Source of the DNA: Octopus sinensis | Lineage: Eukaryota | Direction: 5' to 3' | DNA length: 64,000 bases | Assembly (NCBI RefSeq): GCF_006345805.1 | Contig: NC_043026.1 | Location: 8,432,001 to 8,496,000, forward strand | The notes under the pieces: generated by a model | The model's database searches: none | What the model saw: only the letters and a program-made list of their open reading frames with translations | Told to the model about the DNA's origin: nothing | Made by a program: the position numbers and the translations under genes | Shown here: one piece after another, positions 1-64,000 of the stretch | Layout: the number at the start of each line of letters is the position of its first letter | Position numbering within the stretch: the first letter of the stretch is position 1

Positions 1-951
1 GGGTTTCTTTGGTTATGAATTCGTATTTTATTCTATTCTCTTCCCAGTCAATGACGTATATGGTCCGACCAAACATTTCTACACCTATAAGCGTAGAATG
101 TTCCAAATAAGAAACCAAGATTAATCCTAGCTGAATTCTTTTGATTTCCAAACTTAAAGGGTTGATAATAAGAATCATCTTTCGAAATGGGAGGGTGGCG
201 AGGACTGTGTCTTCACTGATTCTAGTAAAATCAGTGACAGAAGATGAGCAACGAACATCGTTTCTGTTGCCGTCTCTTGTTATACAACATATTGTCATAC
301 AGTGGCGGGAATATGTTACAATTCCCCCTTGTATGACAACAATATTGGATATGGGGTTGCTTAAGTCTTCACCAGATTCCTCAATCTTTGCTTCTCTGGT
401 CACAACTGGCTGAAGAGGCCGAAATTTTGTGGTTAGTTTGGTGGTTCAATGGTCTTGTGTTTGTCTTGTAAAACATTTTTGGTTATGTATTGTTCCAGAA
501 AATATTCAAGTTTTCCTAAAATATCAAAGTCTTGACTATGATAATATTTCTTAAAGTCTTTCATCAGAATTTCTATTCTCTGTGTAAAATGTTTTAGAAA
601 AGTATTTTCATCCATTCCAATTTTTTTTAAAAAAGTACATATTTCTTTCCGAGAATTTATCAACAAATCAATTTTTTCGTCATAGGCATTGAATCTTGTA
701 TAAAATATGTGTTTGTCCAAAATATTTCGTCTTCCCATTATTTCCCAGTTTTTAGGGTCTCCTTTATGTTTTTTTTTTGTTGTTGGCTGAGATGAAGATC
801 GTTTCTCGGACATTTCTCTCCTGAACCGTCGTCTCTCTCATATTACACCTTTTATTGTCAACTCCTTCTTCATCCCATTTTGGTGTCGAGTTCCTTAAAG
901 CCCTTTCAGAGGGATAAGTTTCCTTAAAGTATTTTCAGTCTGGTCTTCCAT
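1..951 (-). pseudogene. Multi-propeller family copy 1, 5' part (runs off window); four 1-nt A-run deletions disrupt the frame
   Basis: ATG at 951 gives MEDQTENTLRKLIPLK as in copy 3, preceded by the same acceptor TTTCTTTACAG (959-960). Single A missing versus copies 2/3 near 903, 843, 822 and 437. After the last one the frame reads FRPLQPVVTREAKIEESGEDLSNPISNIVV...FITKET to the window edge. Confidence 0.85.
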
Positions 952-18019: not shown

Positions 18020-21000
18020 ATGGAAGCCCCAAGAGAAAATTCTTTAAGGAAACTTATCCCTCAAATAAGGGCTTTAAGGAACTCAACACCAAAATGGGAT
18101 GAAGAAGGAGTTGAGAAGAAAAGGTGTAAATATGAGAGAGATGATGGTTCAAGGAGAGAAATGTCCAAGAAACGATCTTCATCACAGCCAACAACAAAAC
18201 TAAAAAGACATAACGGAGACCCTAAAAACTGGGAAATAATGGGGAGACGAGATATTTTGGACAAACACATATTCTATACAATACACAATGCCTATGAGGA
18301 CAAAATTAATTTGTTGATAAATTCTCGGAAAGAAATATGTACTTTTTTAAAAAAAATTGGAATGGATGAAAATACTTTTCTAAAACATTTTACACAGAGA
18401 ATAAAAATTCTGACGAAAGACGTTAAAAAAAACGATTACAATCAAGAATTTATTATTTTTGGAAAACTAGAAATGTTCCTGGAACACTATATACAAAGAA
18501 ATATTCTACAAGACAAACACAAAACCATTGATCCACCAAAAATAATCACAAAATTTCGGCAACTTCAACCAGTTGTGACCAGAGAAGCAAATATTGAGGA
18601 ATCTGGAGAAGAATTTGAAGAAATCCCAATAATATCAAATATTGTCATCATAGAGGAGGGAGTGATGACATATTCCCACCATTATAAGATAATAAGTTTA
18701 GTAACAAGAGACAGTGACAGAAATGATATCCATTGTCCATCTTCTGTGACCAGTTTCACCAGAATCAGTGAAGACATGGTTCTGGCAACCCTCCCCTTCC
18801 AAGAAATGATTCTTATTATCAGCCCCAAAACCTTCAAGATCAAAAGGATACAGTTGGGGTTACATATGGTGAGTTACTTGGAAGATTCTACACTTATAGG
18901 TGTAGAAATGTTTGGTAAGATAGTTTACGAATTTGATTGGGAGGATAATACCATTAACTATCAATTTATTACCAAAGAAACACCTACAGATATTGCTGTA
19001 GGGGTCCAGAATATACTTGTAATTACATTCGCCAGCATCAACAGAGTAATCTGTTACAAACTGGATGGCCAACAGTTATGGGAGGTAGAGACCCATTCTC
19101 TGCACCTCCCAAGTAAAATTTCTCTGTACCAACACTATTTCTATGTCCTCCAGGGACAAATAATTTATAGGATTTCAGCTAAAGGTGGTGTGACAAGGAG
19201 GGACATTGGCAGGAAATGCCGCTCTATTTCTGTTGGTAAAGATGCCATTTTGGTAACAGATTATTGCGGCAAACCACATGGTATTCAAATGAATAAAGAC
19301 TTTTGGCCCAAACTGTCATACAACCACCAGCTACATACCCCCAGTTTAAAAGACTATATTGATATTGAGGATTGCTACAACATTACAAATATTCTACCTA
19401 TGTCTACATCTTCTATATTAATAATTTACAAAAACAAGAAAGCTAAATTATTCACTGATAATGGGGAAATAATTAGCCAAAATAATTCAGTTTTCGTTGA
19501 GCTTCCTTCTTTCTGTTGTAGAATAAACGCAAACAGATTCCTGGTATTTTATCATGAAATGAAAGGATTTCAGTATATAACCTGTCCTGAACTAAGAAAA
19601 GGCCCTATAATAAAGGTGCAAACTGGTTACATGAAAATATGTCATATTGTATCAAATAAGTGTTTAGCTGTGACCACCACTGAAAACAAAAGCGAGATCC
19701 ATATCCTATTGATCAACAAAGATAAAGTTGACATTGCAGAAAGAATTTCTCTGGGACATTATAATGTCAGCATTGCTGCAACTCCAATTAATTTTGTAGT
19801 CGTAGATGGAAACGAAAATAAAATGGTATTTTATTCCACATGTGGTGAAAAACTTTTTCAAAAATACCTTCCATTCTATGGCTACCCTCATCACATCTAC
19901 TCTGATAATGTTTATTTCTATGTCCTCTTCAAGAGACACTCTATTCTCAGATGTTACGATCTATATGGACAAATGAAATGGCAGTGGGAACTGCCTTTCC
20001 CTGTTCACCCTCACATTGCTGTTTTCCAAGGAACTCTTTATGTCCCGGACACTCAACTCAACAGGGTTCTTCTTTACAAGTATCAAGACCGGTCGTCTGG
20101 CTGTCGTTTACCCACGAAAAATCCTTACATCAGAAATCTAAATCTACGACTCAAAGAAAAGAAGAATGACCAAAAACTTGTCATTGGTGAAATATGTAAT
20201 CTGTCCAATGGACAGTTGGTGGTGTCTGACATCAACCATGATTGCTTGTTATACATTTCTCAAGAAGGAGACATTGTGTCCAGATTATCTCTGCTGTCTA
20301 CAGCTACAGATATATGTCAATGGGATTCTAATCATATAGGGGTCACATTACCCCTACAGAAACAATTAAGGGTCATCGGAAACCTATCAAAGAGAGTGAG
20401 AAGTATATCATTAAGGCAGCCTTATGTACGGGCGTGTAAGTTGGGTGAATGTGAAATTGTTTGTTATTGTGATAAACCATCACAATTAGATATTTTAGCC
20501 ATCAATAATTATAATCAAGTTGAAGTAATTAAGACAATTAATATCCCTGTTTTTGTGAAATCATTATCAATAGAGAAGAAAACAGAAAAGCTATTAATTG
20601 TTACTAAGGAAAAAGCTTTTCAGTACAACACTAGAATAGGTGGTGGTGGTCATGGCGGTCGTCAAATGGTCCCCAGTGTTTTAATGTCCCAAGTGAAACG
20701 TCCCCTCAGTCTCCAAGGTGGATCTATTGACCAAACGTCTGTTTATCTGATAGACAGAAGCCGTATGTTTGCCATAAACGATCATAATTTAGTGGTTAAT
20801 GATCTCGTTACAAATAATCAACTTAATTATTATATCGACCTGGTGGATGTATTTTCCAGAAACATTTCTGTCAGTGAAATGTTGTCTTCCACTTTATATC
20901 TACAGGACCTGACAGTTTCTGATAAAGCCAGACATATTCCTCTCCCTAAACATTTGGGAGACAAAGGACCAGTGTGGATTAGATCTTTGGTTCTTACTGA

Positions 21001-22381
21001 AAATAATCTGATTGCAGGATGTGACTTGAGGAATGGAAAGATTAAGATATTCACTTTGGATGGTCAGCTTTTGGATTCAATCAAAGTGAATGTTTATGGA
21101 GATATTAAAATGTGTCGATGGCAGTCAAACACACTGGTCATTACGAGTTGGGATGATGATGATCTTGATAAACCCCAACTGTTGACATTAAAAGTGGAAT
21201 TTCCATTGTCGTTGGTAATTTACCAAATGAGAAATAATTATAAATGTGTGGCTTCTTTATCAAACAATCAACTGGTTTTTAGTATATTGGGAGATGTAGG
21301 TCATTTGTATTTTGTTGATATTGATGAAATACATTCAAGTGTGAAGGAATTAAAACAAATAGACATACCTGAACCATTAATAAGGAGAGGCAAAGATGGA
21401 AATTATTCTGATGAAATCCACGATATTAAAGTTACTGCTGAAGATGTCATCATTGTCTTCAACTGGAGATTCATCATTTTCTTCAACAGTGGTGGTCAAT
21501 ATTTACATTCAGTCAGACACTACATGCGGTATTTTAGTAATGACAGGATGACAATTGATGACAGCTTTTTGTACATTTATGGTGACTGGGTGAAATGTTT
21601 AGGTGCATCTGGATATCAAAACATTTTATGTTTGACCCAGAATGCGGAATACAAGAGAATATTTTTAAATAAAAGAATTTATAAAGATAAAGTATATTTC
21701 CCCAGTATAGACTGTAAAGGACCGAGGTTTGTTGGAAGCCCCAGGAGGGAAGAAAGGAATGAATTGTATGTTGAAGGGTTGTTTATGGTGAATCGAGACA
21801 GCTTCCCGGTTGCTCGTTTACAAACAGACGAATGTCCTGTTCAAGTAAAAGATTTTGATGTCTCTGAGGAAGGAAAGACAGTTGTGTGTGAAAAAGCCAA
21901 TAATGGAAATGTTAAAATATTCAATGAAGACGGCCAGTTGCTATGTCACAGAAATGTTGCAAGTTTAGTTGGTGGTGTGTGTTTTACGCAAGAATCACAC
22001 ATAATGGCCACGGTTCCTAAAAGGAAAGAAATATTTCAACTGAATGGAGAAGATTTGCAGACATCTCAAGTTTGGTCGAGTCTCATCCCTTATGGTGTAT
22101 TATGGAGAAAAGTGGGAAATATTTACTGGTGTGTACATAATGAATTGATTGAATGTCATTGCATAAAGATTGATGGGGACCAAGTGAACATTCTGGAATC
22201 TGTGTCGTTATCAAATCTTGATTCTGGTCTTCGTTTCCCTTCCATTACATCTGAAACGAACAAGGAAATATTCAGTAATGAATTAATTAATAATTTGGAA
22301 TACAGAGGAAGAGATGGAGATGGAGGAAGAAGAAGAGGTAAATCAGGTGATGTGTTTATATATATATACACACATATTTAG
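18020..22381 (+). CDS. Multi-propeller family copy 2, 1453 aa (five propellers; C-terminal propeller deleted)
   Basis: Uninterrupted ORF with acceptor at 18011-12; collinear with copy 3 to GKSG, then joined at 22350/22351 to 3'-flank microsatellite sequence that supplies DVFIYIYTHI*. Confidence 0.85.
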   Translation: MEAPRENSLRKLIPQIRALRNSTPKWDEEGVEKKRCKYERDDGSRREMSKKRSSSQPTTKLKRHNGDPKNWEIMGRRDILDKHIFYTIHNAYEDKINLLINSRKEICTFLKKIGMDENTFLKHFTQRIKILTKDVKKNDYNQEFIIFGKLEMFLEHYIQRNILQDKHKTIDPPKIITKFRQLQPVVTREANIEESGEEFEEIPIISNIVIIEEGVMTYSHHYKIISLVTRDSDRNDIHCPSSVTSFTRISEDMVLATLPFQEMILIISPKTFKIKRIQLGLHMVSYLEDSTLIGVEMFGKIVYEFDWEDNTINYQFITKETPTDIAVGVQNILVITFASINRVICYKLDGQQLWEVETHSLHLPSKISLYQHYFYVLQGQIIYRISAKGGVTRRDIGRKCRSISVGKDAILVTDYCGKPHGIQMNKDFWPKLSYNHQLHTPSLKDYIDIEDCYNITNILPMSTSSILIIYKNKKAKLFTDNGEIISQNNSVFVELPSFCCRINANRFLVFYHEMKGFQYITCPELRKGPIIKVQTGYMKICHIVSNKCLAVTTTENKSEIHILLINKDKVDIAERISLGHYNVSIAATPINFVVVDGNENKMVFYSTCGEKLFQKYLPFYGYPHHIYSDNVYFYVLFKRHSILRCYDLYGQMKWQWELPFPVHPHIAVFQGTLYVPDTQLNRVLLYKYQDRSSGCRLPTKNPYIRNLNLRLKEKKNDQKLVIGEICNLSNGQLVVSDINHDCLLYISQEGDIVSRLSLLSTATDICQWDSNHIGVTLPLQKQLRVIGNLSKRVRSISLRQPYVRACKLGECEIVCYCDKPSQLDILAINNYNQVEVIKTINIPVFVKSLSIEKKTEKLLIVTKEKAFQYNTRIGGGGHGGRQMVPSVLMSQVKRPLSLQGGSIDQTSVYLIDRSRMFAINDHNLVVNDLVTNNQLNYYIDLVDVFSRNISVSEMLSSTLYLQDLTVSDKARHIPLPKHLGDKGPVWIRSLVLTENNLIAGCDLRNGKIKIFTLDGQLLDSIKVNVYGDIKMCRWQSNTLVITSWDDDDLDKPQLLTLKVEFPLSLVIYQMRNNYKCVASLSNNQLVFSILGDVGHLYFVDIDEIHSSVKELKQIDIPEPLIRRGKDGNYSDEIHDIKVTAEDVIIVFNWRFIIFFNSGGQYLHSVRHYMRYFSNDRMTIDDSFLYIYGDWVKCLGASGYQNILCLTQNAEYKRIFLNKRIYKDKVYFPSIDCKGPRFVGSPRREERNELYVEGLFMVNRDSFPVARLQTDECPVQVKDFDVSEEGKTVVCEKANNGNVKIFNEDGQLLCHRNVASLVGGVCFTQESHIMATVPKRKEIFQLNGEDLQTSQVWSSLIPYGVLWRKVGNIYWCVHNELIECHCIKIDGDQVNILESVSLSNLDSGLRFPSITSETNKEIFSNELINNLEYRGRDGDGGRRRGKSGDVFIYIYTHI

Positions 22382-33474: not shown

Positions 33475-34930
33475 TCATCATCATCGTTTAACGTCCGCTT
33501 TCCATGCTAGCATGGGTTGGACGAATTGACTGAAGGCTGGTGAACCAGATGGCTGCACCAGGCTTCAATCTTGATCTGGCAGAGTTTCTACAGCTGGATG
33601 CCCTTCCTAACGCCAACCATTGAGAGTGTACTGGGTGCTTTTACGTGTCACCGGCACGGGGCCAGTCACGCGATACTGGTAACGACCTTGCTCAAATCTT
33701 TTACACATTCCACTGGCACAGGTGCCAGTAAGGCAATGCTGGTAACTATCAAGCTCAAATGGTGACTTTTATGTGCCACCTGCACGGAGGCCAGATAGCT
33801 GCTCTGGACAGGATCACACTCGGATGGTGCACTTAATACTCTACTAGCACGGGGCTCAAGTACCAGTAAGGCGACGCTGGTAATGATCACAATCGAAGGG
33901 TGCCTTTTAAGTGCCACTGGCACGGAAGCCAGTTAGCAGCTACGGACGTTAGTCATTGAATTGGATTTTGATTTCACTTGATCAACAGGTCTTCGCAAGC
34001 AGAGTTTAAGTCGTCCAAAGAAGGAAAAGGTATGCATAAGTGGGCTGGTTATGCCCCTGGCATAGGCCATGAGGTTATGGTCACATTTGGTTTGCCGGGT
34101 CTTCTCACGCATGGCATATTTCCAAAAGTCTCAGTCACTAGTCATTTCCTTGGTGAGGCCTAAAGTTCGAAGGTCGTGCTTCACCACTTCATCCCAGGTC
34201 TGGGTCTACCTCTTCCACAGGTTCCCTCAACCGCTATGGTGTGGCACTTTTTCACACAGCTATCCTCATCCATTCTTGCCACATGACCATACCAGCACAG
34301 TCATCTCTCTTGCTCACCACATCTGATGCTTCTTAGGTCCAACATTTCTCTCAAGGTACTTACACTCTGTCGAGTACGCACACTGACATTACATATCCAT
34401 GAGATCATACTGGTTTCATTCCTTGCGAGCTTACGCATTTCCTCAGCAGTCACATCCCATGTTTCACTGCCATGTAGCATGGCTGTTCGTACACATGCGT
34501 CATACAGTCTACCTTTTACTCTGAGTGAGAGGCCTTTTGTCACCAGCAGAAGTAAGAGCTCTCTGAACTTTGTCCAAGCTATTCTTATTCTAGCAGCTAC
34601 ACTTTCAGCGCACCCTCCCCCGCGACTGACTTGGTCACCTAGGTAATGGAAGCTATCAACTACTTCTAGTTTTTCTTCCTGGAATGTGGCGGAAGTTGCT
34701 CTCTGTGCATTTTCAGTGTTTATAGCTCCCGAGCATCTGCCACACACAAAAACTATCTTCAGCATTAGCCTTCCTTTGATATTGCCGCACCTCTTATGCA
34801 TCCATAGCTTACACTGGGTACATCTTAGAGTTTCAACCAAAACCTCAACTACAGATCGAGCAGGGCCATCTACCTGAAGGGATTTGCGGTTTGCTTGCCT
34901 TCCCACTTATTAGGACTTTGGTTTTAGCTA
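33475..34930 (-). mobile_element. Degenerate RTE LINE 3' fragment
   Basis: ORF 34301-34906 LRCTQCKLWMHKRC...YLGDQVS...TAMLHGSETW, plus RTE 3'-UTR and (ATC)n tail. Confidence 0.9.
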
Positions 34931-37131: not shown

Positions 37132-40100
37132 ATGGAAGACCAGACTGAAAATACTTTAAGAAAACTTATCCCTCTGAAAAGGGCTTTAAGTTATTCAACA
37201 CCAAAATGGGATGAAGAAGGAGTTGACAATAAAAGAGGTAAATATGAGAGAGACAACGGTTCAAGGAGAGAAATATCCGAGAAACGATCTTCATTTCAGC
37301 CAACAACAAAACAAAAAAGACATAAAGGAGACGATAAAAACTGGGAAATAATTGGAAGACGAAATATTTTGGACAAACACATATTTTATACAAGATTCAA
37401 TGCCTATGAGGACAAAATTAATTTGTTGATAAATTCTCGGAAAGAAATATGTACTTTTTTAAAAAAAATTGGAATGGATGAAAATACTTTTCTAAAACAT
37501 TTTACACAGAGAATAGAAATTCTGACGAAAGACATTAAAAAAAACGATTACAATCAAGAATTTATTATTTTTGGAAAACTAGAATCGTTCCTGGAACACT
37601 ATATACAAAGAAATATTCTACAAGACAAACACAAAACCATTGATCCACCAAAAATAACCACAAAATTTCGGCCTCTTCAACAAGTTGTGACCAGAGAAGC
37701 AGATATTGAGGAATCTGGAGAAGAATTTGAAGAAATCCCAATAATATCCAATATTGTCATCATAGAGGAGGGAGTGATGACATATTCCCACCATTGCAAG
37801 ACAATAAGTGTAGTAACAAGAGACGGTGACAGAATTGATGTCCATTGTCCATCTTCTGTGACCAGTTTCACAAGAATCAGTGAAGACATGGTTCTGGCAA
37901 CCCTCCCCTTCCAAGAAATGATTCTTATTATCAGCCCCCAAACCTTCAAGATCAAAAGGATAAAGTTGGGGTTATATATGGTGAGTTACTTGGAAGATTC
38001 TACACTTATAGGTGTAGAAATGTTTGGTAAGATAGTTTACCAATTTGATTGGGAGGATAATACCATAAACTATCAATTTATTACCAAAGAAACACCTACA
38101 GATATTGCTGTAGGGGTCCAGAATATACTTGTAATTACATTCGCCAGCATCAACAGAGTAATCTGTTACAAACTGGATGGCCAACAGTTATGGGAGGTAG
38201 AGACCCATTCTCTGCACCTCCCTAGTAAAATCTCTCTGTACCAACACTATTTCTATGTCCTCCAGGGACAAATAATTTATAGGATTTCAGCTAAAGGTGG
38301 TGTAACAAGGAGGGACATTGGCAGGAAATGCCGCTCTATTTCTGTTGGTAAAGATACCATTTTGGTTACAGATTATTGCGGCAAACCACATGGTATTCAA
38401 ATGAATAAAGACTTTTGGCCCAAACTGTCATACAACCACCAGCTACATACCCCCAGTTTAAAAGACTATATTGATATTGAGGATTGCTACAACATTACTA
38501 ATATTCTACCTATGTCTACATCTTCTATATTAATAATTTACAAAAACAAGAAAGCTAAATTATTCACTGATAACGGGGAAATAATTAACCAAAATAATTC
38601 AGTTTTCTTTGAGCTTCCTTCTTTCTGTTGTAGAATAAACGCAAACAGATTCCTGGTATTTTATCGCGAAAAGAAAGGGTTTCAGTATATCACCTGTCCT
38701 GAACTAAGAAAAGGCCCTTTAATAAAGGTGAAAACTGGTTACATGAAAATATGTCATATCGTATCTAATAAGTGTTTAGCTGTGACCACCACTGAAAACA
38801 AAAGCGAGGTCCATATCCTCTTGATCAACGAAGATAAAGTTGACATTGCAGAAAGAATTTCTCTGGGACATCATAATGTCAGCATTGCTGCAACTCCAAT
38901 TAATTTTGTAATCGTAGATGGAAACGAAAATAAAATGGTATTTTATTCCACATGTGGTGAAGAACTTTTTCAAAAATACCTTCCATTCTATGGCTACCCT
39001 CATCACATCTACTCTGATAATGTTTATTTCTATGTCCTCTTCAGGAGACACTCTATTCTCAGATGTTACGATCTATATGGACAAATGAAATGGCAGTGGG
39101 AACTGCCTTTCCCTGTTCACCCTCACATTGCTGTTTTCCAAGGAACTCTTTATGTCCCGGACACTCAACTCAACAGGGTTCTTCTTTACAAGTATCAAGA
39201 CCGGTCTTCTGGCTGTTGTTTACCCACCAAAAATCCTTATATCAGAAATCTAAATCTACGACTCAAAGAAAAGGAGAATGACCAAAAACTTGTCATTGGC
39301 AAAATATGTAATCTGTCCAATGGACAGTTGGTGGTGTCCGATATCAAGCATGATTGCTTGTTGTACATTTCTAAGGAAGGAGACATTGTGTCCAGATTAT
39401 CTCTGCCGTCTACAGCTACAGATATATGTCGATGGGATTCTAATCATATAGGTGTCACATTACCCCTACAGAAACAATTAAGGGTCATCGGAAACCTATC
39501 AAAGACAGTGAGAAGTGTATCATTAAGGCAGCCTTATGTACGGGTGTGTAAGATGGGTGAAGGTGAAATTGTTTGTTATTGTGATAAACCATCACATTTA
39601 GATATTTTAGCCATCAATTATTATAATCAAGTTGAAGTAATTAAGACAATTAATATCCCTGTTTTTGTGAAATCATTATCAATAGACAAGAAAACAGAAA
39701 AGCTATTAATTGTTACTAGGGGAAATTCTTTTCAGTACAACATTACAATAGGTGGTGGTGGTCATGGCAGTCGTCAGATGGTCCCCACTGTTTTAATGCC
39801 CCGAGTGAAACGTCCCCTCAATCTCCAAGGTGGATCTATTGACCAAACGTTTGTTTATCTGATAGACAGAAGCCGTATGTTTGCTATAAATGGTCATAAT
39901 TTGGTGGTTAATGATCTCGTTACAAATAATCAACTTAATTATTATATCGACCTGGTGGATGTATTTTCCAGAAACATTTCTCTCAGCGAAATGTTGTCTT
40001 CCACTTTATATCTACAGGACCTGACAGTTTCTGATAAAGCCAGACATATTCCTCCCCATCAATATTTGGGAGACGAAGCACCAGTGAGGATTAAATCTTT

Positions 40101-42591
40101 GGTTCTTACGGAAAATAATCTGATTGCAGGATGTGACTGGGAGAATGGAAACATTCAGATATTCACATTAGATGGTCACCTTTTGGATTCAATCAAAGTG
40201 AATGTTTATAGATATATTAAAATGTGTCAATGGCAGTCAAACATACTGGTCATTACGAGTTGGGATGATGAAGATCTTGATAAACCCCAACTGTTGACAT
40301 TAAAAGTGGAATTCCCATTGTCATTGGTAATTTACCAAATGAGAAATAATTATAAATGTGTGGCTTCTTTATCAAACAATCAACTAGTTTTTAGTACATT
40401 GGGAGACGGAGGTCATTTGTATTTTGTTGATATTGATGAAATACATTCGAGTGTGAAGGAAATAAAACAAATAGACATACCTGAACCATTAATAAGGAGA
40501 AAAGAAGATGGAGATTATTCTGATGGAATCCTGGATATTAAAGTTACTGCTGAAGATGTCATCATTGTCTTCAATGGAAGATTCATCATTTTCTTCAACA
40601 GTGGTGGTCAATATTTACATTCAGTCAGACACTACATGGAGTATTATTTTGGTATTGATGACAGGATGACAATTGATGACAGTTTTTTGTTCATATATGG
40701 TGGGTGGGAGAAATGTATAGGGTCATCTGGATATCGAAACATTTTATGTTTGACCCAGAATGGGGAATACAAAAGAATATTTTTAAATAAAAGAATTTAT
40801 AAAGATGATGTAGTTTTCTCCAGTATAGACTGTAAAGGACCAAGGTTTGTTGGAAGCCTTGGGAAATGGGGAAGAGAGAATGAATTGTTTGTTGAAGGGT
40901 TGTTTATGGTGAATCGAGACAGCTTCCCGGTTGCTCGTTTACAAACAGACAAATGTCCTGTTCAAGTAAAAGATTTTGATGTCTCTGAGGAAGGAAAGAC
41001 AGTTGTGTGTGAAAAAGCCAATAACGGAAATGTTAAAATATTCGATGAAGACGGCCAGTTGCTATGTCACAGAAATGTTGCAAGTTTAGTTGGTGGTGTG
41101 TGTTTTACAGGAGAATCACACATAATGGCCACGGTTCCTAAAAGGAAAGAAATATTTCAACTGAATGGAGAAGATTTGCAGACATCTCAAGTTTGGTCGA
41201 GTTTCATCCCTTATGGTGTAATATGGAGAAAAGTGGCGGGTATTTACTGGTGTGTACATATTGAATTGATTGAATGTCATTGCATAAAGATTGATGGGGA
41301 CCAAGTGAACATTCTGGAATCTGTGTCATTATCAAATCTTGATTCTGGTCTTCGTTTCCCTTCCATTACATCTGAAACGAACAAGGAAATATTCAGTAAT
41401 GAATCAATTAATAAATTGGAATACAGAGGAGGAGATGGAGATGGAGGAGGAAGTAGAAGAGGTAAATCAGGTGAAATAATTGGTAAAGGTAGATTAAAGG
41501 TGAGATGTGGTAATTACATAGCGGAGATTAATAATTCAGGAATTGATGAAATATCAGTGAGGAGACTTCCATATAGGACAGCAATGGTCCCTTTTTCCAT
41601 TCCTGCATTCGAGGAACCTGTTGATTATAATTTTATGGATATTAGGGACCAGAACAGTAAACTAATTAAGTTAGATGAGAATGTGAGTGTGTTGATATTT
41701 CGAGAAAGTGTCACATTAATCAGAACAACAACTACAACAGTGGACATACTTCAACATGAACAACAACAACTACCACCACTGGACATATGTCGGTGGACAG
41801 AGGAATGTTTCATTGTCGCCTTTGGGAGAGAAATGAGGGTCTTCAACAGGGATCTCTGTCGTTTAAAAACCATCAGAACTGAGAAATACTACAACAGGAT
41901 TTATAAATACAACAACAATCAACTCGTGTGTGGTGGTCATTATATTAGAGACATAACTCAAGAAGAGAGACACAAGAAATACAGAAGAATGTGGGAGAAC
42001 AACAAGGATTACTATTATTGCAAAGACCGCAAAACCTTTGACTCTTATTATGTGGATGTGGTTGATATCAAAGATGGGAAATGTAAAGATGAAGTGTGTC
42101 ATGGGGAGATGAGGAGATTGGGAAGGTTGGAGGGGGATGAAGGGGTGGTGGATGATGTGGGAGTCACATCTTTTGGTGATGTTGTTGTTGTGAGGTGGGA
42201 GATGAAGAAGAATTTTGGAAGCTGGAAAGTTTTGTGTTTTGCGGAATGGTTTAGGGAAAAGTCTTTGGTGAGGAGGATAAGAGTAGGAGGAATAGGATTT
42301 TTTGGTCCGGGATATTATATTACAAGACTTCATTTCACCATAATTGGTAAATGTGTGTATATAACAGATTTCAGAAACAATATTTACGAAATACCTCGAC
42401 ATATTGAAGAGGAAACATCTGAAGATAATGAAATCCTGATATCTGAAGATAATCCAAAATATTTACTCCTGAGAGGGGATGATAATGAAGTCGTTGAAGT
42501 TCTTGGTTTGGATGTTTCAGAAAATTCTTTGATGGTTTTTGGAATTATTCCTGGACGTCAATCTTTTGCTTTCTTTTATTTTGACAAATAA
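37132..42591 (+). CDS. Multi-propeller family copy 3, complete 1819-aa protein: N-terminal basic/helical module plus six degenerate NHL/TolB-like beta-propellers
   Basis: 5460-nt ORF preceded by acceptor TTTCTTTACAG (37123-24). NHL-like motifs such as TPTDIAVG.QNILVITF..INRVICYKLDGQ. Six homologous unit starts near 37741, 38491, 39292, 40087, 40963 and 41650. The fold call is by eye only. Confidence 0.85.
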   Translation: MEDQTENTLRKLIPLKRALSYSTPKWDEEGVDNKRGKYERDNGSRREISEKRSSFQPTTKQKRHKGDDKNWEIIGRRNILDKHIFYTRFNAYEDKINLLINSRKEICTFLKKIGMDENTFLKHFTQRIEILTKDIKKNDYNQEFIIFGKLESFLEHYIQRNILQDKHKTIDPPKITTKFRPLQQVVTREADIEESGEEFEEIPIISNIVIIEEGVMTYSHHCKTISVVTRDGDRIDVHCPSSVTSFTRISEDMVLATLPFQEMILIISPQTFKIKRIKLGLYMVSYLEDSTLIGVEMFGKIVYQFDWEDNTINYQFITKETPTDIAVGVQNILVITFASINRVICYKLDGQQLWEVETHSLHLPSKISLYQHYFYVLQGQIIYRISAKGGVTRRDIGRKCRSISVGKDTILVTDYCGKPHGIQMNKDFWPKLSYNHQLHTPSLKDYIDIEDCYNITNILPMSTSSILIIYKNKKAKLFTDNGEIINQNNSVFFELPSFCCRINANRFLVFYREKKGFQYITCPELRKGPLIKVKTGYMKICHIVSNKCLAVTTTENKSEVHILLINEDKVDIAERISLGHHNVSIAATPINFVIVDGNENKMVFYSTCGEELFQKYLPFYGYPHHIYSDNVYFYVLFRRHSILRCYDLYGQMKWQWELPFPVHPHIAVFQGTLYVPDTQLNRVLLYKYQDRSSGCCLPTKNPYIRNLNLRLKEKENDQKLVIGKICNLSNGQLVVSDIKHDCLLYISKEGDIVSRLSLPSTATDICRWDSNHIGVTLPLQKQLRVIGNLSKTVRSVSLRQPYVRVCKMGEGEIVCYCDKPSHLDILAINYYNQVEVIKTINIPVFVKSLSIDKKTEKLLIVTRGNSFQYNITIGGGGHGSRQMVPTVLMPRVKRPLNLQGGSIDQTFVYLIDRSRMFAINGHNLVVNDLVTNNQLNYYIDLVDVFSRNISLSEMLSSTLYLQDLTVSDKARHIPPHQYLGDEAPVRIKSLVLTENNLIAGCDWENGNIQIFTLDGHLLDSIKVNVYRYIKMCQWQSNILVITSWDDEDLDKPQLLTLKVEFPLSLVIYQMRNNYKCVASLSNNQLVFSTLGDGGHLYFVDIDEIHSSVKEIKQIDIPEPLIRRKEDGDYSDGILDIKVTAEDVIIVFNGRFIIFFNSGGQYLHSVRHYMEYYFGIDDRMTIDDSFLFIYGGWEKCIGSSGYRNILCLTQNGEYKRIFLNKRIYKDDVVFSSIDCKGPRFVGSLGKWGRENELFVEGLFMVNRDSFPVARLQTDKCPVQVKDFDVSEEGKTVVCEKANNGNVKIFDEDGQLLCHRNVASLVGGVCFTGESHIMATVPKRKEIFQLNGEDLQTSQVWSSFIPYGVIWRKVAGIYWCVHIELIECHCIKIDGDQVNILESVSLSNLDSGLRFPSITSETNKEIFSNESINKLEYRGGDGDGGGSRRGKSGEIIGKGRLKVRCGNYIAEINNSGIDEISVRRLPYRTAMVPFSIPAFEEPVDYNFMDIRDQNSKLIKLDENVSVLIFRESVTLIRTTTTTVDILQHEQQQLPPLDICRWTEECFIVAFGREMRVFNRDLCRLKTIRTEKYYNRIYKYNNNQLVCGGHYIRDITQEERHKKYRRMWENNKDYYYCKDRKTFDSYYVDVVDIKDGKCKDEVCHGEMRRLGRLEGDEGVVDDVGVTSFGDVVVVRWEMKKNFGSWKVLCFAEWFREKSLVRRIRVGGIGFFGPGYYITRLHFTIIGKCVYITDFRNNIYEIPRHIEEETSEDNEILISEDNPKYLLLRGDDNEVVEVLGLDVSENSLMVFGIIPGRQSFAFFYFDK

Positions 42592-47552: not shown

Positions 47553-48874
<1,322 letters not shown>

Positions 48875-50831: not shown

Positions 50832-50879
<48 letters not shown>

Positions 50880-50880
<1 letters not shown>

Positions 50881-51816: not shown

Positions 51817-54800
51817 ATGGAGAAGATTAATGAAGAAAACAAAATGTTGGCTCTCAATCCTGCCACAGTCTGTGATACAACAGCAATTTATAAGGAAACT
51901 ACACCAATTCTTCCCCAAATATTACATACACAAAACACAAAGAAAACAGAAGAACAGGAAAGAAAAGACACAAAGAAATCTAAAGAACAGGAAAAGTCCA
52001 TGTTACCAAGTTTCCTTCATATTGTGACATGTTACCGAACACTAATCAAAACAGACCACATCAATACATTTATAGATTATGTAAAGGATAAATGTAATCA
52101 CATGCACTCTCTGGGTTTAAATGGATCTTGAATTTTACGTAATATCAAACGTAAAATGCCAAGATTTCTGGAAATTGCAAGACAAAATAATGATTTTGTT
52201 CACCAAAACTTTGATTGGTTTCAACAAAGACTCTTTGACATTTATGTCACCTGTAACCCATACAACCACAAGACCATTGAACCACCAAAAGTAACCACAA
52301 AATTTCGGCCTCTTCAGCCAGTTGTGACCAGAGAAGCAAACATTGAGGAATCTGGAGAAGAATTTGAAGAAATCCCAATAATATCAAATATTGTCATCAT
52401 AGAGGAGGGAGTGATGACATATTCCCACCATTGCAAGATAATAAGTTTAGTAACAAGAGACAGTGACAGAATTGATGTCCATTGTCCATCTTCTGTGACC
52501 AGTTTCACCAGAATCAGTGAAGACATGGTTCTGGCAACCCTCCCCTTCCAAGAAATGATTCTTATTATCAGCACCAAAACCTTTAAGATCAAAAGGATAA
52601 AGTTGGGGTTATATATGGTGAGTTACTTGGAAGATTCTACACTTATAGGTGTAGAAATGTTTGGTGAAACAGTTTACCAATTTGATTGGGAGGATAATAC
52701 CATAAACTATCAATTTATTACCAAAGAAACACCTACAGATATTGCTGTAGGGGTCCAGAATATACTTGTAATTACATTCGCCAGCATCAACAGAGTAATC
52801 TGTTACAAACTGGATGGTCAACAGTTATGGGAGGTAGAGACCCATTCTCTGCACCTCCCAAGTAAAATCTCTCTGTACCAAAATTATTTCTATGTCCTCC
52901 AGGGACAAATAATTTATAGGATTTCAGCTAAAGGTGGTGTAACAAGGAGGGACATTGGCAGGAAATGCCGCTCTATTTCTGTTGGTAAAGATACCATTTT
53001 GGTAACAGATTATTGCGGCAAACCACATGGTATTCAAATGAATAAAGACTTTTGGCCCAAACTGTCATACAACCACCAGCTACATACCCCCAGTTTAAAA
53101 GACTATATTGATATTGAGGATTGCTACAACATTACTAATATTCTACCTATGTCTACATCTTCTATATTAATAATTTACAAAAACAAGAAAGCTAAATTAT
53201 TCACTGATAACGGGGAAATAATTAACCAAAATAATTCAGTTTTCTTTGAGCTTCCTTCTTTCTGTTGTAGAATAAACGCAAACAGATTCCTGGTATTTTA
53301 TTGTGAAATGAAAGGGTTTCAGTATATCACCTGTCCTGAACTAAGAAAAGGCCCTTTAATGAAAGTCCATACTGATTACATGAAAATATGTCATATTGTA
53401 TCAAATAAGTGTCTGGCTGTGACCACCACTGAAAACAAAAGCGAGGTCCATATCCTCTTGATCAACGAAGATAAAGTTGACATTGCAGAAAGAATTTCTC
53501 TGGGACATTATAATGTCAGCATTGCTGCAACTCCAATTAATTTTGTAGTCGTAGATGGAAACGAAAATAAAATGGTATTTTATTCCACATGTGGTGAAGA
53601 ACTTTTTCAAAAATACCTTCCATTCTATGGCTACCCTCATCACATCTACTCTGATAATGTTTATTTCTATGTCCTCTTCAAGAGACACTCTATTCTCAGA
53701 TGTTACGATCAATATGGAGAAATGAAATGGCAGTGGGAACTGCCTTTCCCTGTTCACCCTCACATTGCTGTTTTCCAAGGAACTCTTTATGTCCCGGACG
53801 CTCAACTCAACAGGGTTCTTCTTTACAAGTATCAAGGCCGGTTGTCTGGCTGTCGTTTACACACAAAAAATCCTTACATCAGAAATCTAAATCTACGACT
53901 CAAAGAAAAGGAGAAAGACCAAAAACTTGTCATTGGCGAAATATGTAATCTGTCCAATGGACAGTTGGTGGTGTCTGACATCAAGCATGATTACTTGTTG
54001 TACATTTCTGAAGAAGGAGACATTGTGTCCAGATTATCTCTGCCGTCTACAGCCACAGATATATATCGATGGGATTCAAATCATATAGGGGTCACATTAC
54101 CCCTACAGAAACAATTAAGGGTCATCGGAAACCTATCAAAGACAGTGAGAAGTGTATCATTAAGGCAGCCTTATGTACAGGTGTGTAAGATGGGTGAAGG
54201 TGAAATTGTTTGTTATTGTGATAAACCATCACATTTAGATATTTTAGCCATCAATTATTATAATCAAGTTGAAGTAATTAAGACAATTAATATCCCTGTG
54301 TTTGTGAAATCATTATCAATAGACACAAAAACAGAAAAGCTATTAATTGTTACTAAGGAAAAAGCTTTCCAGTACAACACTAGAATAGGTGGTGGTGGTC
54401 ATGTCGGTCGTCAGATGGTCCCCAGTGTTTTAATGTCCCAAGTGAAACGTCCCCTCAGTCTCCAAGGTGGATCTATTGACCAAACATCTGTTTATCTGAT
54501 AGACAGAAGCCGTATGTTTGCCATAAACGATCAGAATTTGTTGGTCAATGATCTCGTTACTAATAATCAACTTAATTATTACATCGACCTGGTGGATGTA
54601 TTTCCCAGAAACATTTCTCTCAGTGAAATGTTGTCTTCCACTTTATATCTACAGGACCTGACAGTTTCTGATAAAGCCAGACATATTCGTCTCCCTAAAC
54701 ATTTGGGAGACAAAGAACCAGTGGTAATTAATCATTTGTTAATTACTGAAAATAACTTGATTGCAGGATTTGACTGGGAGAATGGAAACATCAAGATATT

Positions 54801-56387
54801 CACATTTGATGGTCACCTTTTGGATTCAATCAAAGTGAATTTTTATACATGTAATAAAATGTGTCGATGGCAGTCAAACACACTGGTCATTATAAATTTG
54901 GATTGTTTTTATGCTGAATCCGAACTGTTGACATTAAAAGTGGAATTTCCATTGTCGTTGGTAATTTACCAAACAAGAAGAAAATATCATTGTGTGGCTT
55001 CTTTATCAAATAATCAACTGGTTTGTAGTAATTTGGGAGATGCATGTCATTTGTATTTTGTTGATATTGATGAAATACATTCGAGTGCGAAGGAAATAAA
55101 ACAAATAGACATACCTGAACCATTAATAGAGAGAACAGAAGATGGAAATTATTTTGATGTCATCCATGATATTAAGGTTACTGCTGAAGATGTCATCATT
55201 GTCTTAAATGAAAGATTCATAATTTTCTTCAACAGTGATGGTCAATATTTACATCCAATCAGACACTACATCGATTTTGATTATTTTGTTGCAAGCAAGA
55301 TGACAACTGATGACAGTTTTTTGTACATTTATGGTGAGTGGAAGAAATATTTGGGTCTGTTTAGATATAAAAACATTTTGTGTTGGACCCAAAAAGGGGA
55401 ATACAAGAGAATATTTTTAAATCAAAGAATTTATAAAGATAAAGTAGAATTCTGCAATATAGAATGTAAAGGACCAAGGTTTGTTGGAAGCCCCACAGCG
55501 GGATGGAGAAAGAATGAATTGTATGTTGAAGGGTTGTTTATGGTGAATCGAGACAGCTTCCCGGTTGCTCGTTTACAAACAGACGAATGTCCTGTTCAAG
55601 TGAAAGATTTTGATGTCTCTGAGGAAGGAAAGACAGTTGTGTGTGAAAAGCCAATAATGGAAATTTTAAAATATTTGATAGAGATGGGGAGTTGCTATGT
55701 CATAGAGATGCTGGAAGTTTAGTTGGTGGTGTGTGTTTTACACAAGAATCACGCATAATGGCCACGGTTCCTAAAAGGAAAGAAATATTTCAACTGAATG
55801 GAGAAGATTTGCAGGCATCTCAAGTTTGGTCGAGTCTCATCCCTTATGGTATAATATGGAGAAAAGTGGCGGGTATTTACTGGTGTGTACATAATGAATT
55901 GATTGAATGTCATTGCATAAAGATTGATGGGGACCAAGTGAACATTCTGGAATCTGTGTTGTTATCAAATCTTGATTCTGGTCTTCGTTTCCCTTCCATT
56001 ACATCTGAAACGAACAAGGAAATATTCAGTAATGAATTAATTAATAAATTGGAATACAGAGAAGGAGATGGAGATGGGGGAAGAAAAAGAAGAGGTAAAT
56101 CAGGTGAAATAATTGGTAAAGATAGATTAAAGGTGAGATGTGGTAATTACATAGCAGAGATTAATAATTCAGGAATTGATAAAATATCAGTGAGGAGACT
56201 TCCATATAGGACAGCAATGGTCCCTTTTTCCATTCCTGCATTCGAGGAACCTGTTCATTATGATTATAGTGACATTAGGGACCGGAACAGTAAACTAATT
56301 AAGTTAGATGAGAATGTGAGTGTGTTGGTGTTTCGAGAAAGTGTCACAATCTTCAGGTGGACTTCCAATAATTCAGTGTCAATTTGA
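51817..56387 (+). pseudogene. Multi-propeller family copy 4: divergent N-terminal module, in-frame TGA (52129-31), A-run frameshift (about 55648), truncated early in propeller 6
   Basis: ORFs 51817-52131 and 52156-55722 share a frame; GAAAAGCC versus GAAAAAGCC in the other copies; homology ends at GTGTCACA (56348). Confidence 0.85.
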
Positions 56388-56420
56388 CACTGAATTATTG
56401 GAAGTCCACCTGAAGATTGT
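56346..56420. repeat. Perfect 75-bp palindrome (37-bp arms, 1-nt centre)
   Basis: ACAATCTTCAGGTGGACTTCCAATAATTCAGTGTCAA-T-TTGACACTGAATTATTGGAAGTCCACCTGAAGATTGT. Confidence 0.97.
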
Positions 56421-56448
56421 CGATCAAGACAAGAAACGATTGTAGTGG
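56406..56448 (+). ncRNA. Minimal type I hammerhead ribozyme with intact core
   Basis: CCAC-CTGAAGA-TTGTC-GATCAA-GACAA-GAAAC-GATT-GTA-GTGG: stem I CCAC/GTGG, stem II TTGTC/GACAA, GUA triplet ending at 56444. Confidence 0.85.
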
Positions 56449-56623
56449 CGGTTTTTTTGACTATTTATTAAAATTTTATGTATTGATTAAGTCTTTCCTT
56501 GTTTGTTTTGCAAAATAGTGGTTTTGTCTCTAATAATATTTTATAATATTTTACTATAAAATTGGATTTAATCCTAAATCTGATTTTTTCCCTGTAAATT
56601 TGGATTTATTCCCTAATATTTAT

Positions 56624-56668
<45 letters not shown>

Positions 56669-60942: not shown

Positions 60943-63900
60943 TTATTTGTCAAAATAAAAAAAAGCAAAAGATTGACGTCCAGGAATAATTCCAAAAACC
61001 ATCAAAGAATTGTCTGAAACATCCAAACCAAGAACTTTGTAAACTTCATTATCGATACCTCCCAGGAGCAAATATTGTTGAATATCTTCAGATGTTTGAT
61101 GTTCAATATGTCCAGGTATTTGGTAAATATTGTTATATCTGTCTACTATATACACATATTCACCTTGTGTAGTTAGATAATGTCTATGGATGTTGTTGTA
61201 TAGATATCTTGGTAGTTTTATACTTCTGACCAAATGTTCACTAAACCAAATGACATCATAGGCATAACCACTCCAGTATCTCTCCCGCTCTTCCTTCACA
61301 ACGACAATATCTCCACCAGATGTCACTACTATATCCAACACCACCTCTATCTCCTCCTTCTTTCTCAGCCAAGAGCACACTTTATGAATGTATTTACATA
61401 CCTTTCCATCAATAGCAATTACATCTACATAATAGGAAGACCAGCTTCTACATTCAGTCATGTCTTCAATATAAGGACCACCACCACCACACACGAGTTG
61501 ATTGTCGTTGTATTTATAAATCCTGTTGTAGAATTTCTTAGTTTTGATGGTTTTTAAACGACGGAGATCCCTGTTGAAGAACATCAGTTCTTCACCAAAG
61601 GCGACAATGAAACATTCCTCTTTCCACCAACATATGTCCAGTGGTAGTTGTGGTAGTTGTTTATGTTGAAGTATGTCCACTGTTGTTGTTGTTCTGATTA
61701 ATGTGACACTTTCTCGAAACATCAACACACTCACATTCTCATCTAACTTAATTAGTTTACTATTGTAATCTCTACTGTCTTCGATATCATAATTAACAGG
61801 TTCAGTGCATGTAGGAATGGAAAAAGGGACCATTGCTGTCCGATATGGAAGTCTCCTCACTGATATTTCATCAATTCCTGGCTTACTCTCCGCTATGTAA
61901 TTACCACATCTCACCTTTAATCTACTTTTACCAATTATTTCACCTGATTTACCTCTTTCCACTTCATCTCCGCCACTGTATTCCAATTTATTAATTAATT
62001 CATTACTGAATATTTCCTTATTCGTTTCAGATGTAATGGAAGGGAAACGAAGACCAGAATCAAGATTTGATAATGACACAGATTCCAGAATGTTCACTTG
62101 GTCCCCATCAATCTTTATGCAATGACATTCAATCAATTCAATATGTGCACACCAGTAAATATTTCCCACTTTTCTCCATATCACACCATAAGGTACTTGA
62201 CTTTCCCAAACTTTATATTTCCCCAAATTTTCTTGCTTCAGTTGAAATATTTCTCGTCTGTTAGGGACCGTGACCATTATGCCTCTTCCATGTGTAAAAC
62301 ACACACCACCAACTAAACTTCCTAGATCTCTGTGGCATAGCAATTCCCCATCTCTATCAAACATTTTAACATTTCCATTATTGGCTTTTTCACACACAAC
62401 TGTCTTTCCTTCATCAGAGATGTCAATATCTTTCACCTGAACAAGACATTCGTCTGTTTGTAAATGACAAACAGGGAATTTTTCCCGATTAAGCTGAAAC
62501 AAACCTTCAACATACAATTTATCTTTGTTGTGGCTCCCAGCAAAACGTGGACCATTACAGTTTATACTTGTGAAATCTATTTTATCTTTATAAATTCTAC
62601 TATTTATAAATATTCTGTTGTATTCTCCTGTCTGTGTCAAACAGACTAAGCTGTTATAGCCAGTGAAATCACCATAACGATCCCACCATCCATAAATGTA
62701 CAAATAACTGTCATCAATTGTCATGTTGTTGTATTTAATATCATCATAAGCCATGTAGTGTCTAACTGAATGCAAATACTGACCACCACTGTTGAAGAAT
62801 ATTATGAATCTTCTATTGCTGACAATGATGACACCATTAGCAGTAACTATAATATTACAGATGTAATTAATAAGTCCACGTCTGTCTTTCGTTAATGTCT
62901 CAGGTATGCCTATTTGTTTTATTATATTCACGGTTGAATGTTTTTCGTCTATAACGATAACATACAAATTACATTTATCTCTATATTTACTACACAACAG
63001 TTGATTGTTTGATAAAGAAGCAATACATTTATATTCATTTCTTGTCAGGTAGGTTACCGACGACAATGGGAACCCAACTTTTAAAGTCAACAATTGGGAC
63101 TTAGCACCATAAGTTGTAATGACCAGTGTGTTTCTCTGCCAACGACACATATTAATAGGAAAAACATTCAATTTGATAGAGTCCACAAGTTGACCGTCAA
63201 ATGTGAATATCTTAATGTTTTTATTATTCCAGTCATATGACGCTATCAGGTTATTTTCAATAACACACAAACGGCGAATGTACACTGGTTTTTGGTCTCC
63301 AAAACCTGAAGGGACAACGACATGTCTAGCTTTGTCAGAAACTGTCAGGTCCTGTAGATATAAAGTGGAAGACAACATTTCACTGACAGAAATGTTTCTG
63401 GAAAATACATCCACCAGGTCGATATAATAATTAAGTTGATTATTTGTAACGAGATCATTAACTAACAAATTATGATTGTTTATGGCAAACATACGGCTTC
63501 TGTCTATCAGATAAACAAATATTTTATCAATAGATCCACCGCAGAGATTGAGGGGACGTTTCACTTGGGACATTAAAACACTGGGGACCATCTTACTACT
63601 ACTATAACCACCACCACAGATACTAGTGTTGTAATGAAAGGCTATTTTCCTAGTAACAATTAATAATTTTCGTGTTTCATTTTCTATTGCTAATGATTTC
63701 ACAAACACAGGGATATTAATTGTCTTAAGTACTTCGACTTGATTATAATAATTGATGGCTAAAATATCTAAATGTGATGGATTATCACAGTAACAAACAA
63801 TTTCACATTCACCCATCTTACACACCCGTACATAAGGCTGCCTTAATGATACACTTCTCACTGTCTTTGATAGGTTTCCGATGACCCTTAATTGTTTCTG

Positions 63901-64000
63901 TAGGGGTAATGTGACCCCTATATGATTAGAACCCCACTAACATATATCTGTGGCTGTAGACAGCAGAGATAATCTGGGCACAATGTCTCCTTCCTCAGAA
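60943..64000 (-). pseudogene. Multi-propeller family copy 5, 3' part (propellers 3-6), in-frame TAG at 63937-63939; continues off window
   Basis: ORF 60943-63861 ends in SFAFFYFDK*; the upstream frame reads SEEGDIVPRLSLLSTATDIC*WGSNHIG, where the other copies have Q, R or R. Confidence 0.8.

Follow-up and report, generated by a model that had tools for sequence, protein, structure and literature searches.

Why should a gene that is kept nearly identical among its copies along most of its length change again and again, at the same codons, within one segment? The question is raised by a 64-kb window of Octopus DNA (the whole stretch analyzed here; G+C 36%, few long open reading frames (ORFs)), in which five copies of one intronless gene encoding ~1,800 amino acids (aa) were identified. 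The initial annotation had described the fourth of the propellers encoded by this gene as a hypervariable island with bursts of exclusively non-synonymous change, and had proposed diversifying selection on one ligand-binding face within a gene-converted scaffold. The best explanation overall, which we regard as likely, is a propeller array homogenized by conversion that carries a diversifying recognition face and would serve the intracellular recognition of fast-evolving targets. The copies and the island lie in the window as follows.

1..951, minus strand: copy 1, 5′ end only (N-terminal ~320 aa), cut by the window start.
18020..22381, plus strand: copy 2, ORF of 1453 aa without the C-terminal propeller; propeller 4 island at 20942–21796.
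37132..42591, plus strand: copy 3, intronless ORF of 1819 aa, the sole intact copy in the window.
40054..40917, plus strand: the hypervariable island, propeller 4 of copy 3, codons 975–1262.
52054..56450, plus strand: copy 4, with an alternative N-terminal module; propeller 4 island at 54691–55551.
60946..63999, minus strand: copy 5, a divergent subtype cut by the window end; propeller 4 island at 62485–63315.

At the base composition of the window ~127 stops are expected by chance in a frame of 1819 codons, so the ORFs have been maintained. Copy 4 carries an in-frame stop near its 5′ end and a frameshift near 55650, and copy 5 has an in-frame stop upstream of its 972-aa ORF.

Over 104 aa of propeller 1 (FDWEDNT...SVGKD), copies 2 and 3 encode the same protein sequence and differ by four synonymous changes only (ATT/ATA, CCA/CCT, ATT/ATC and GTG/GTA; three of these had been noted initially). 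At the start of propeller 4 (20942–20983 in copy 2 versus 40054–40095 in copy 3, the former having first been placed one base too early), 8 of 14 codons differ, each by one single-nucleotide non-synonymous change (L/P, P/H, K/Q, H/Y, K/E, G/A, W/R and R/K, copy 2 versus copy 3). Across copies 2/3/4/5 the recurrently changing sites PV[W/R/V/Y]I, N[W/G/E/R]RF and YG[D/G/E/W]W correspond to codons 986, 1149 and 1191, respectively, and the reported loop indels are present after HYM/HYI and after GPRFVGS. The designation of this segment as the fourth propeller agrees with the internal homology detected by hhalign. The description of its changes as non-synonymous only holds locally but not across the island, in which the window's own pairs of copies have 20–29 synonymous differences and a synonymous divergence (dS) 2–3 times that of the scaffold.

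When the window copies were compared by Nei–Gojobori (NG86) counts, the scaffold (codons 199–948) of copies 2–4 gave dS of 0.063–0.071, non-synonymous divergence (dN) of 0.028–0.029 and a dN/dS ratio (ω) of 0.39–0.46. In the island (codons 975–1262) dS was 0.13–0.20 and dN 0.086–0.167 between window pairs, and over its first 86 codons ω was 1.6–1.7, with confidence intervals that span 1. Eleven loci of an O. vulgaris chromosome were fetched and 13 further copies extracted from them, giving a 17-copy alignment in which discrete hypervariable positions stand within a nearly invariant framework. In sliding 40-codon windows over 15 paralogs, dN rises from 0.01–0.05 in the flanks to 0.09–0.18 across codons 960–1240, where ω is 1.15–1.87. 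Many pairs of reference-genome paralogs have an island-wide ω of 2–3.3 at a dS of just 0.03–0.05, with 0.3–0.7 in their flanks; for the pair L002–L011 the island holds 4.4 synonymous (Sd) and 56.6 non-synonymous (Nd) differences (binomial P = 0.004).

Codon models M0, M1a and M2a were fitted with our own maximum-likelihood code (GY94/F3x4) on neighbor-joining (NJ) trees with all branch lengths optimized. The results, with the likelihood-ratio test (LRT) of M2a against M1a and the selected class, are these.

Island, codons 975–1262, 16 sequences: M0 ω 1.53; LRT 444.5; 19.3% of sites at ω 9.85.
Island in three sub-blocks with their own trees, 16 sequences: M0 ω 1.37–1.90; LRT 128, 154 and 130; 12–24% of sites at ω 8.6–12.4.
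Island, window copies, 4 sequences: M0 ω 0.83; LRT 54.0; 14.6% of sites at ω 9.5.
Propeller 1, codons 200–470, 8 sequences: M0 ω 0.36; LRT 0.76; no selected class.
Propellers 2–3, codons 520–972, 13 sequences: M0 ω 0.55; LRT 38.5; 9% of sites at ω 3.9.
Immediate flanks, 15 sequences: M0 ω 0.61; LRT 21.4; 11% of sites at ω 4.2.
Simulated M1a null with six recombinant segments, 16 sequences: M0 ω 0.36; LRT 3.6; no selected class.

The diversifying selection proposed in the initial annotation is thus borne out both among the 16 paralogs (log-likelihoods −5032.25 under M1a and −4809.98 under M2a) and among the four window copies alone. Under these models, 15–19% of propeller 4 codons are shown to be driven to change amino acid ~10 times faster than neutral; 43 codons have a posterior above 0.95 for the ω ~10 class, and they include all 17 found in the window-only analysis. 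For the null, M1a was simulated on the island tree with leaf labels shuffled per each of the six segments, which amounts to heavy recombination, and the simulated parameters were recovered. Because this recombinant null gave an LRT of only 3.6, recombination cannot account for LRTs in the hundreds.

Propeller 4 is a hypervariable island, but it is not the only one: codons ~1600–1800 of the C-terminal propeller behave alike, with a sliding ω of 1.07–2.37, an M0 ω of 1.70, an LRT of 284.9 and 17% of sites at ω ~13. The model confidence for the C-terminal propeller is uneven and its strand pattern irregular.

41929..42531, plus strand: second hypervariable island, codons 1600–1800 of copy 3, C-terminal propeller.
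61003–61491, minus strand: the C-terminal island in copy 5, with large indels between the copy-3 and copy-5 types.

A smaller variable patch was also seen near the GGGGH loop between propellers 3 and 4 (codons 849–898 of copy 3, ~39676–39825), and sites with a posterior above 0.95 are scattered through the region of propellers 2–3 (651, 696, 699, 739, 748, 864 and 880); the patch and the scattered sites could reflect weak selection or recombination noise.

Each of the 43 selected codons was placed on the fold by the strand order of an AlphaFold2 (AF2) model, in which the four strands of each blade were labeled A–D, and a face was taken to comprise the loops together with the adjoining thirds of the strands. 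The sites fall into the following groups in copy 3 (all on the plus strand).

40060..40098: codons 977, 986, 988 and 989, entry of strand A, blade 1.
40132..40143: codons 1001, 1003 and 1004, end of strand B and B–C loop, blade 1.
40210..40215: codons 1027 and 1028, D–A connection, blades 1/2.
40261..40287: codons 1044, 1046, 1047, 1049 and 1052, B–C loop of blade 2, which carries indels.
40354..40410: codon 1075, start of strand A, blade 3; codons 1090 and 1093, B–C turn, blade 3.
Within 40495..40578: codons 1122, 1124, 1132 and 1134, long D–A connection, blades 3/4.
Within 40495..40578: codons 1147 and 1149, B–C turn, blade 4 (1149 is the N[W/G/E/R]RF site).
Within 40639..40737: codons 1170, 1172, 1173 and 1176, D–A connection, blades 4/5, the HYM indel loop.
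Within 40639..40737: codons 1191, 1196–1200 and 1202, end of strand B and B–C loop, blade 5, including YG[D/G/E/W]W.
Within 40789..40878: codons 1220, 1226, 1228 and 1230, D–A connection into blade 6.
Within 40789..40878: codons 1243–1245, 1247 and 1249, B–C loop, blade 6, the GPRFVGS indel loop.

By this topological assignment, 42 of the 43 selected sites map to the D–A/B–C side of the predicted propeller, as the initial annotation had anticipated, and the single exception, codon 989, is a mid-strand position of strand A in blade 1. On the opposite side no selected site occurs among the 47 residues of the A–B and C–D loops or at the strand ends, so the sites are not scattered through the core; the counts are 42 of 147 residues on the D–A/B–C side versus 1 of 141 elsewhere (Fisher P = 5e-13), and in a larger, 890-aa model 41 of the 43 sites lie on the same face. 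Successive loops of a propeller blade alternate between its two faces, and the one-face result therefore withstands any shift of the strand labels, which would change the name of the face alone. At the variable positions Trp (5-fold), Arg (2.8-fold), Glu (2.2-fold) and Lys are enriched and Ile, Val and Leu depleted, a bias as expected for an exposed binding surface. Given the predicted fold, these results show that one face of the NHL-like propeller 4 is under strong diversifying selection.

The architecture of the protein was delimited in copy 3 (residues, aa).

~1–200: charged and helical N-terminal region.
~200–470: propeller 1.
~470–720: propeller 2.
~720–972: propeller 3.
975–1262: propeller 4.
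1263–1405: half-propeller, followed by a Gly-rich linker.
~1450–1819: C-terminal propeller.

A profile of propeller 4 (codons 968–1262) aligns by hhalign to segments 200–470, 470–720, 720–972, 1263–1405 (at half length) and 1450–1819, with P values from 8e-5 to 3e-7, and the protein therefore consists of homologous propellers in series; the larger AF2 model of copy 3 is all-β. An AF2 model of codons 960–1275, the island only, reached a predicted local distance difference test (pLDDT) score of 77.3 and a predicted template-modeling score (pTM) of 0.81, and contains 24 strands in six blades of four, with the N-terminal strand 970–973 closing blade 6. When this model was compared with the Protein Data Bank (PDB) by Foldseek, the top matches were the NHL domains of TRIM2, TRIM3, Mei-P26, Brat, Thin and NHL-2, with template-modeling (TM) scores of 0.59–0.71, E ~1e-8 and 10–13% sequence identity; the 890-aa multi-domain model retrieved only generic tandem-propeller matches (TM ~0.2), and a sequence search of the PDB returned no relevant relative. 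Pfam gave nothing above threshold for the whole proteins of copies 2 and 3, paralog P0004 and the distant paralogs, or for the first 223 aa. Specifically, the NHL family (PF01436) was not matched in copies 2 and 3, the sole hint being SGL at E = 0.023, and the distant paralog P0047 scored 18.5 bits for NHL against a cut-off of 20. Propeller 4 is thus NHL-like in its predicted fold; the protein is neither a TRIM-NHL protein nor a member of the Pfam NHL family.

No RING, B-box or coiled-coil was detected by Pfam in the first 223 aa or the whole protein, and NACHT/NB-ARC had no Pfam match in copy 3, copy 2, P0004 or the distant paralogs. When the translations were inspected by eye, one Cys was counted in residues 1–200 and no zinc-binding pattern was seen. 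Searches of copy 3 for a signal peptide and a transmembrane segment detected neither.

The N-terminal ~200 aa occur as two alternative modules: identity to copy 3 there is ~85% in some paralogs and only ~35% in the others, and the propellers that follow either module are >90% identical. The regions concerned are 37132–37700 in copy 3 and 18020–18590 in copy 2 versus 52054–52650 in copy 4, and the modules are seen also in P0004 and P0007; neither module has a Pfam match. Because the N-terminus diverges while the following propellers remain >90% identical, the comparison suggests that N-terminal modules have been swapped between paralogs.

If one face of propeller 4 is diversifying, what keeps the rest of the gene alike? 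Along the scaffold, copies 2, 3 and 4 each switch to a different nearest paralog in almost every 80-codon window, with 96–100% identity to copies that lie megabases apart from them, among them copies of the otherwise divergent copy-5 type. The island has a stable nearest neighbor, L007a for copy 4 and copies 2 and 3 for each other, at an identity of just 92–95%. Window positions 47761–64000 are collinear with locus L007 of O. vulgaris (OX597841.1:21983906-22009315) at 94–98.5% identity, so that copy 4 and L007a of the O. vulgaris reference are positional homologues, and copy 5 corresponds to L007b, to which it is 98.5% identical. Copy 4 and L007a are 94–98% identical in their flanks, and within the island they agree at 66 consecutive polymorphic sites, a run unmatched in any permutation (global P < 0.003); in its 5′ half, copy 4 shows 96.5% identity to L006 but only ~91% to L007a. 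Copy 4 and L007a were the one pair to reach global significance in a Sawyer-type run test, which has limited power; several others were significant at the level of the pair. The gene-converted scaffold of the initial annotation is in this way supported by mosaic nearest neighbors: because the nearest paralog changes every ~80 codons, and because copy 4 and L007a agree in flanks and island but not in scaffold, gene conversion between paralogs probably keeps the scaffolds of the expanded subfamily nearly identical, a conclusion that is well supported but not proven. The island itself has 5 substitutions between copy 5 and L007b and 40 differing codons between copy 4 and L007a, 16 of which are selected sites, with 10 of the 16 differing at two or three nucleotides. 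The pattern fits conversion of the framework together with retention and rapid turnover of island specificity.

Copy 4 also diverges from its positional homologue L007a far more than the flanks of the two copies do.

Database searches returned 39 homologues, all from O. vulgaris, O. sinensis, O. bimaculoides or Argonauta hians, and a single O. vulgaris chromosome of 29.19 Mb, OX597841.1, carries ~25 of them. When 1.84 billion cluster representatives were scanned exhaustively with HMMER, only 24 matched, and the five that were looked up (P0041, P0044, P0047, P0050 and P0054) are all Octopus proteins. The window itself encodes none of the database proteins, and the exact copy-3 protein has no entry in the gene-position collection that was queried, so that the window would represent a closely related genome, another haplotype or an unannotated duplicate. 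Within the databases searched, the gene family is shown to be octopod-restricted and tandemly clustered. The P0044 and P0047 clusters are single-copy distant members, 33–46% identical to copy 3, that lie on other O. vulgaris chromosomes (119 and 216 Mb) and retain 90–99.6% identity between O. vulgaris, O. sinensis and O. bimaculoides. In these three species their propeller 4 is conserved to the same degree as the remaining protein, and hypervariability is therefore specific to the expanded clade, for which the P0044/P0047 type is probably the slow-evolving ancestor.

What might the variable face do? In propellers of the NHL and WD40 types, RNA or protein partners dock on the D–A/B–C face, and in Brat and LIN-41 the RNA partner is bound on the face formed by the D–A and B–C loops. 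Because partners are bound on this side, we take the propeller 4 face as a putative binding surface; of the ligand-binding face first proposed, the restriction to one face stands on the data from this family, and binding would follow by analogy with NHL domains. The variable face of propeller 4 would then be a recognition surface and the array of paralogs a repertoire of binding specificities. Point substitution may create new specificities, which short conversion tracts possibly reshuffle and diversifying selection would maintain, and the same selection would oppose homogenization of the island, which would explain why its dS is 2–3 times higher. The likeliest role would be intracellular recognition of fast-evolving targets, which may be molecules of viruses or other parasites, selfish elements, or non-self; a role in immunity or non-self recognition in particular is a serious candidate that falls somewhat short of an even chance.

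Several points weigh against the combination of a homogenized array and a diversifying recognition face. The region-averaged ω of the island among the window's own copies is 0.66–0.96, below 1, and the combined pN/pS of eight disjoint pairs reaches only 1.28 (P = 0.02). Stops, frameshifts or truncations affect three of the four longer copies in the window, so that some branches are pseudogene branches. The site models are our own implementation on NJ trees, not PAML or HyPhy, and were applied to paralogs that recombine; the null simulation is one replicate; and propellers 2–3 and the flanks also give modest LRTs of 21–38, which may represent weak selection or background inflation by recombination. 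The face was assigned by strand topology and not by solvent exposure measured on coordinates. Pfam recognized no signaling or effector domain in the N-terminal region that could provide the output of a receptor-like mechanism. Finally, no publication on the family turned up when the literature was searched by topic and by six LOC identifiers.

The alternative that survives best keeps the process and changes the biology: the face would tune the binding of endogenous partners, either RNA targets as in TRIM-NHL proteins or the parties to a reproductive or meiotic-drive conflict. The closest folds are indeed RNA-binding NHL domains (Brat, Mei-P26, TRIM2/3, LIN-41 and NHL-2), the enrichment of Arg, Lys and Trp suits nucleic-acid as well as protein binding, and no immune signaling domain was found by Pfam. 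We nevertheless consider this alternative unlikely, on indirect grounds: an ω of ~10 in a large birth-and-death tandem array fits fast-evolving targets better, and no such variability is seen in the distant single-copy paralogs, to which housekeeping roles could more readily be assigned.

A neutral origin, in which propeller 4 escapes conversion under relaxed constraint and accumulates old differences of both kinds without positive selection, would account for an island dS 2–3 times that of the adjacent scaffold and for the low ω of the window pairs; it is also in keeping with the pseudogenization of several copies and with an island nearest neighbor that reflects position rather than conversion. 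The initial annotation had named ω at or below 1 with a proportional rise in dS as the mark of such simple escape, and within the window alone half of this is seen, ω at or below 1 and a raised dS, but the rise is disproportionate, dN increasing 3–6-fold and dS 2–3-fold. Relaxed constraint, moreover, cannot raise ω above 1, yet M0 for the island is 1.53 with a site class at ~10, and several pairs reach 2–3.3 at a dS of only 0.03–0.05. Propeller 1, with the highest dS in the gene (0.1–0.26), still has an ω of 0.2–0.5 and an LRT of 0.76, and the variable sites of propeller 4 occupy one face with strands and opposite loops conserved. A purely neutral account is thus quite improbable, although escape from homogenization is part of the picture because island dS is raised.

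Still less probable is a mutational explanation, by which the variable codons are local hotspots or targets of directed diversification or hypermutation. Many variable codons do differ at two or three nucleotides next to unchanged neighbors, even between copy 4 and L007a, but multiple hits are expected at ω ~10 over the length of the tree, and short conversion tracts from other paralogs could import multi-nucleotide codon changes. Pairs with the same amino acid use a different codon in 8.4% of cases at the 43 codons versus 7.3% in the rest of the island and 5.5% at adjacent codons, so that silent change is not raised; third positions show no excess variability in adjacent codons, and all classes share one substitution spectrum. 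Diversity at codon positions 1/2/3 is 0.52/0.52/0.31 at the selected codons, against 0.075/0.067/0.109 for the remaining island codons and 0.046/0.044/0.055 for the flanks. The least credible alternative is an artefact of misaligned indel-rich loops, pseudogene mixing or a recombination-inflated LRT, for which the indels in four loops, the mosaic paralogs and the LRTs of the flanks and propellers 2–3 might speak, but most selected sites stand in ungapped columns beside invariant residues (among them 986, 988, 1001, 1003, 1027, 1075, 1149 and 1191), block-specific trees keep LRTs of 128–154 against 3.6 in the recombinant neutral simulation, tree-free pairwise ω exceeds 2 in several pairs, and pseudogene branches can only pull ω towards 1.

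The sequence between the gene copies contains other elements. Isolated ~80-codon fragments of the extreme 3′ end of the gene (codons ~1738–1819) recur between copies 4 and 5 and resemble what partial duplications would leave behind, and the reverse-transcriptase and Tc3-type ORFs listed below are separate insertions that lie between gene copies, outside the gene unit.

60520–60756, minus strand: 3′-end gene fragment, ~80 codons.
15761–16006, 20730–20975 and 21163–21408 of reference locus L007: 3′-end gene fragments.
34301–34906, minus strand: PHD-finger fragment ORF, a transposable-element ORF between gene copies.
44155–45672, minus strand: non-LTR (long terminal repeat) reverse-transcriptase ORF with a PHD-like finger (RVT_1, E = 3e-32), of long interspersed nuclear element (LINE) type.
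48015–48590, plus strand: Tc3-type transposase helix-turn-helix ORF (E = 2e-14).

A transposable-element origin of the gene itself was considered and rejected: the 11 fetched O. vulgaris loci share one 29.19-Mb chromosome, on which they span 2.4–22.7 Mb (terminal repeats were not searched for).

The octopus family can be compared with several known systems. TRIM-NHL proteins (TRIM2, TRIM3, Brat, Mei-P26, Thin, NHL-2 and LIN-41/TRIM71) have the same fold, six blades of four antiparallel strands, but they possess one propeller together with RING, B-box and filamin modules, none of which was detected by Pfam in the octopus protein with its five to six propellers in tandem; they are conserved single-copy regulators, whereas the octopus family is a hypervariable array. 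In Podospora anserina, the genes HET-E, HET-D and NWD are reported to have WD40 repeats that evolve in concert, while positive diversifying selection acts on four positions of each repeat at the interaction surface (PMC1805685). These HNWD NOD-like receptors (NLRs) are the nearest analogue in process, a propeller family with homogenized repeats and selected interaction-surface positions, and octopus propeller 4 likewise has a few positions per blade on one face under positive selection (43 sites). They differ in that HNWD proteins combine WD40 repeats with a NACHT NTPase and an N-terminal effector in a fungus, whereas the animal protein has an NHL-like propeller with no NACHT or effector detected, and in that HNWD exchange occurs between repeats within and between genes whereas the exchange seen in octopus involves paralogous genes and not the blades within them.

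TRIM5alpha, the B30.2/SPRY loops of fish finTRIMs, the leucine-rich repeats (LRRs) of plant NLRs and the variable lymphocyte receptors (VLRs) of lampreys are recognition families with positively selected binding loops. The octopus family resembles them in its conserved framework, hypervariable surface positions, tandem birth and death, and ω > 1 at the putative binding surface; the SPRY and LRR families have other folds and known signaling modules, and VLR diversity is somatic whereas octopus diversity is germline-encoded between paralogs. The evolutionary mode is thus familiar, and the protein family and the use of an NHL-like fold are new. To our knowledge, cephalopods have neither adaptive immunity nor large receptor expansions of the bivalve type, and we know of no earlier case of an NHL-type propeller as a hypervariable module.

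The family, which is large, unannotated and confined to one lineage, shows the signature of a recognition repertoire, namely a tandem birth-and-death array with a homogenized framework and an ω of ~10 confined to one face. That it represents a germline-encoded class of intracellular receptors of the octopods' own, in which dozens of tandem paralogs carry variable surfaces on their NHL-like propellers (propeller 4 and the C-terminal one), in place of LRR, SPRY, Ig or WD40 domains, against viruses, parasites or selfish elements, is a tentative proposal that we hold to be on balance doubtful. Little is known about how cephalopods recognize pathogens or non-self, and the family offers a concrete candidate with named residues and paralogs. 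If true, the finding would extend the combination of a conserved scaffold and a variable face, as in the WD40 NLRs of fungi, to animals and to another type of propeller.

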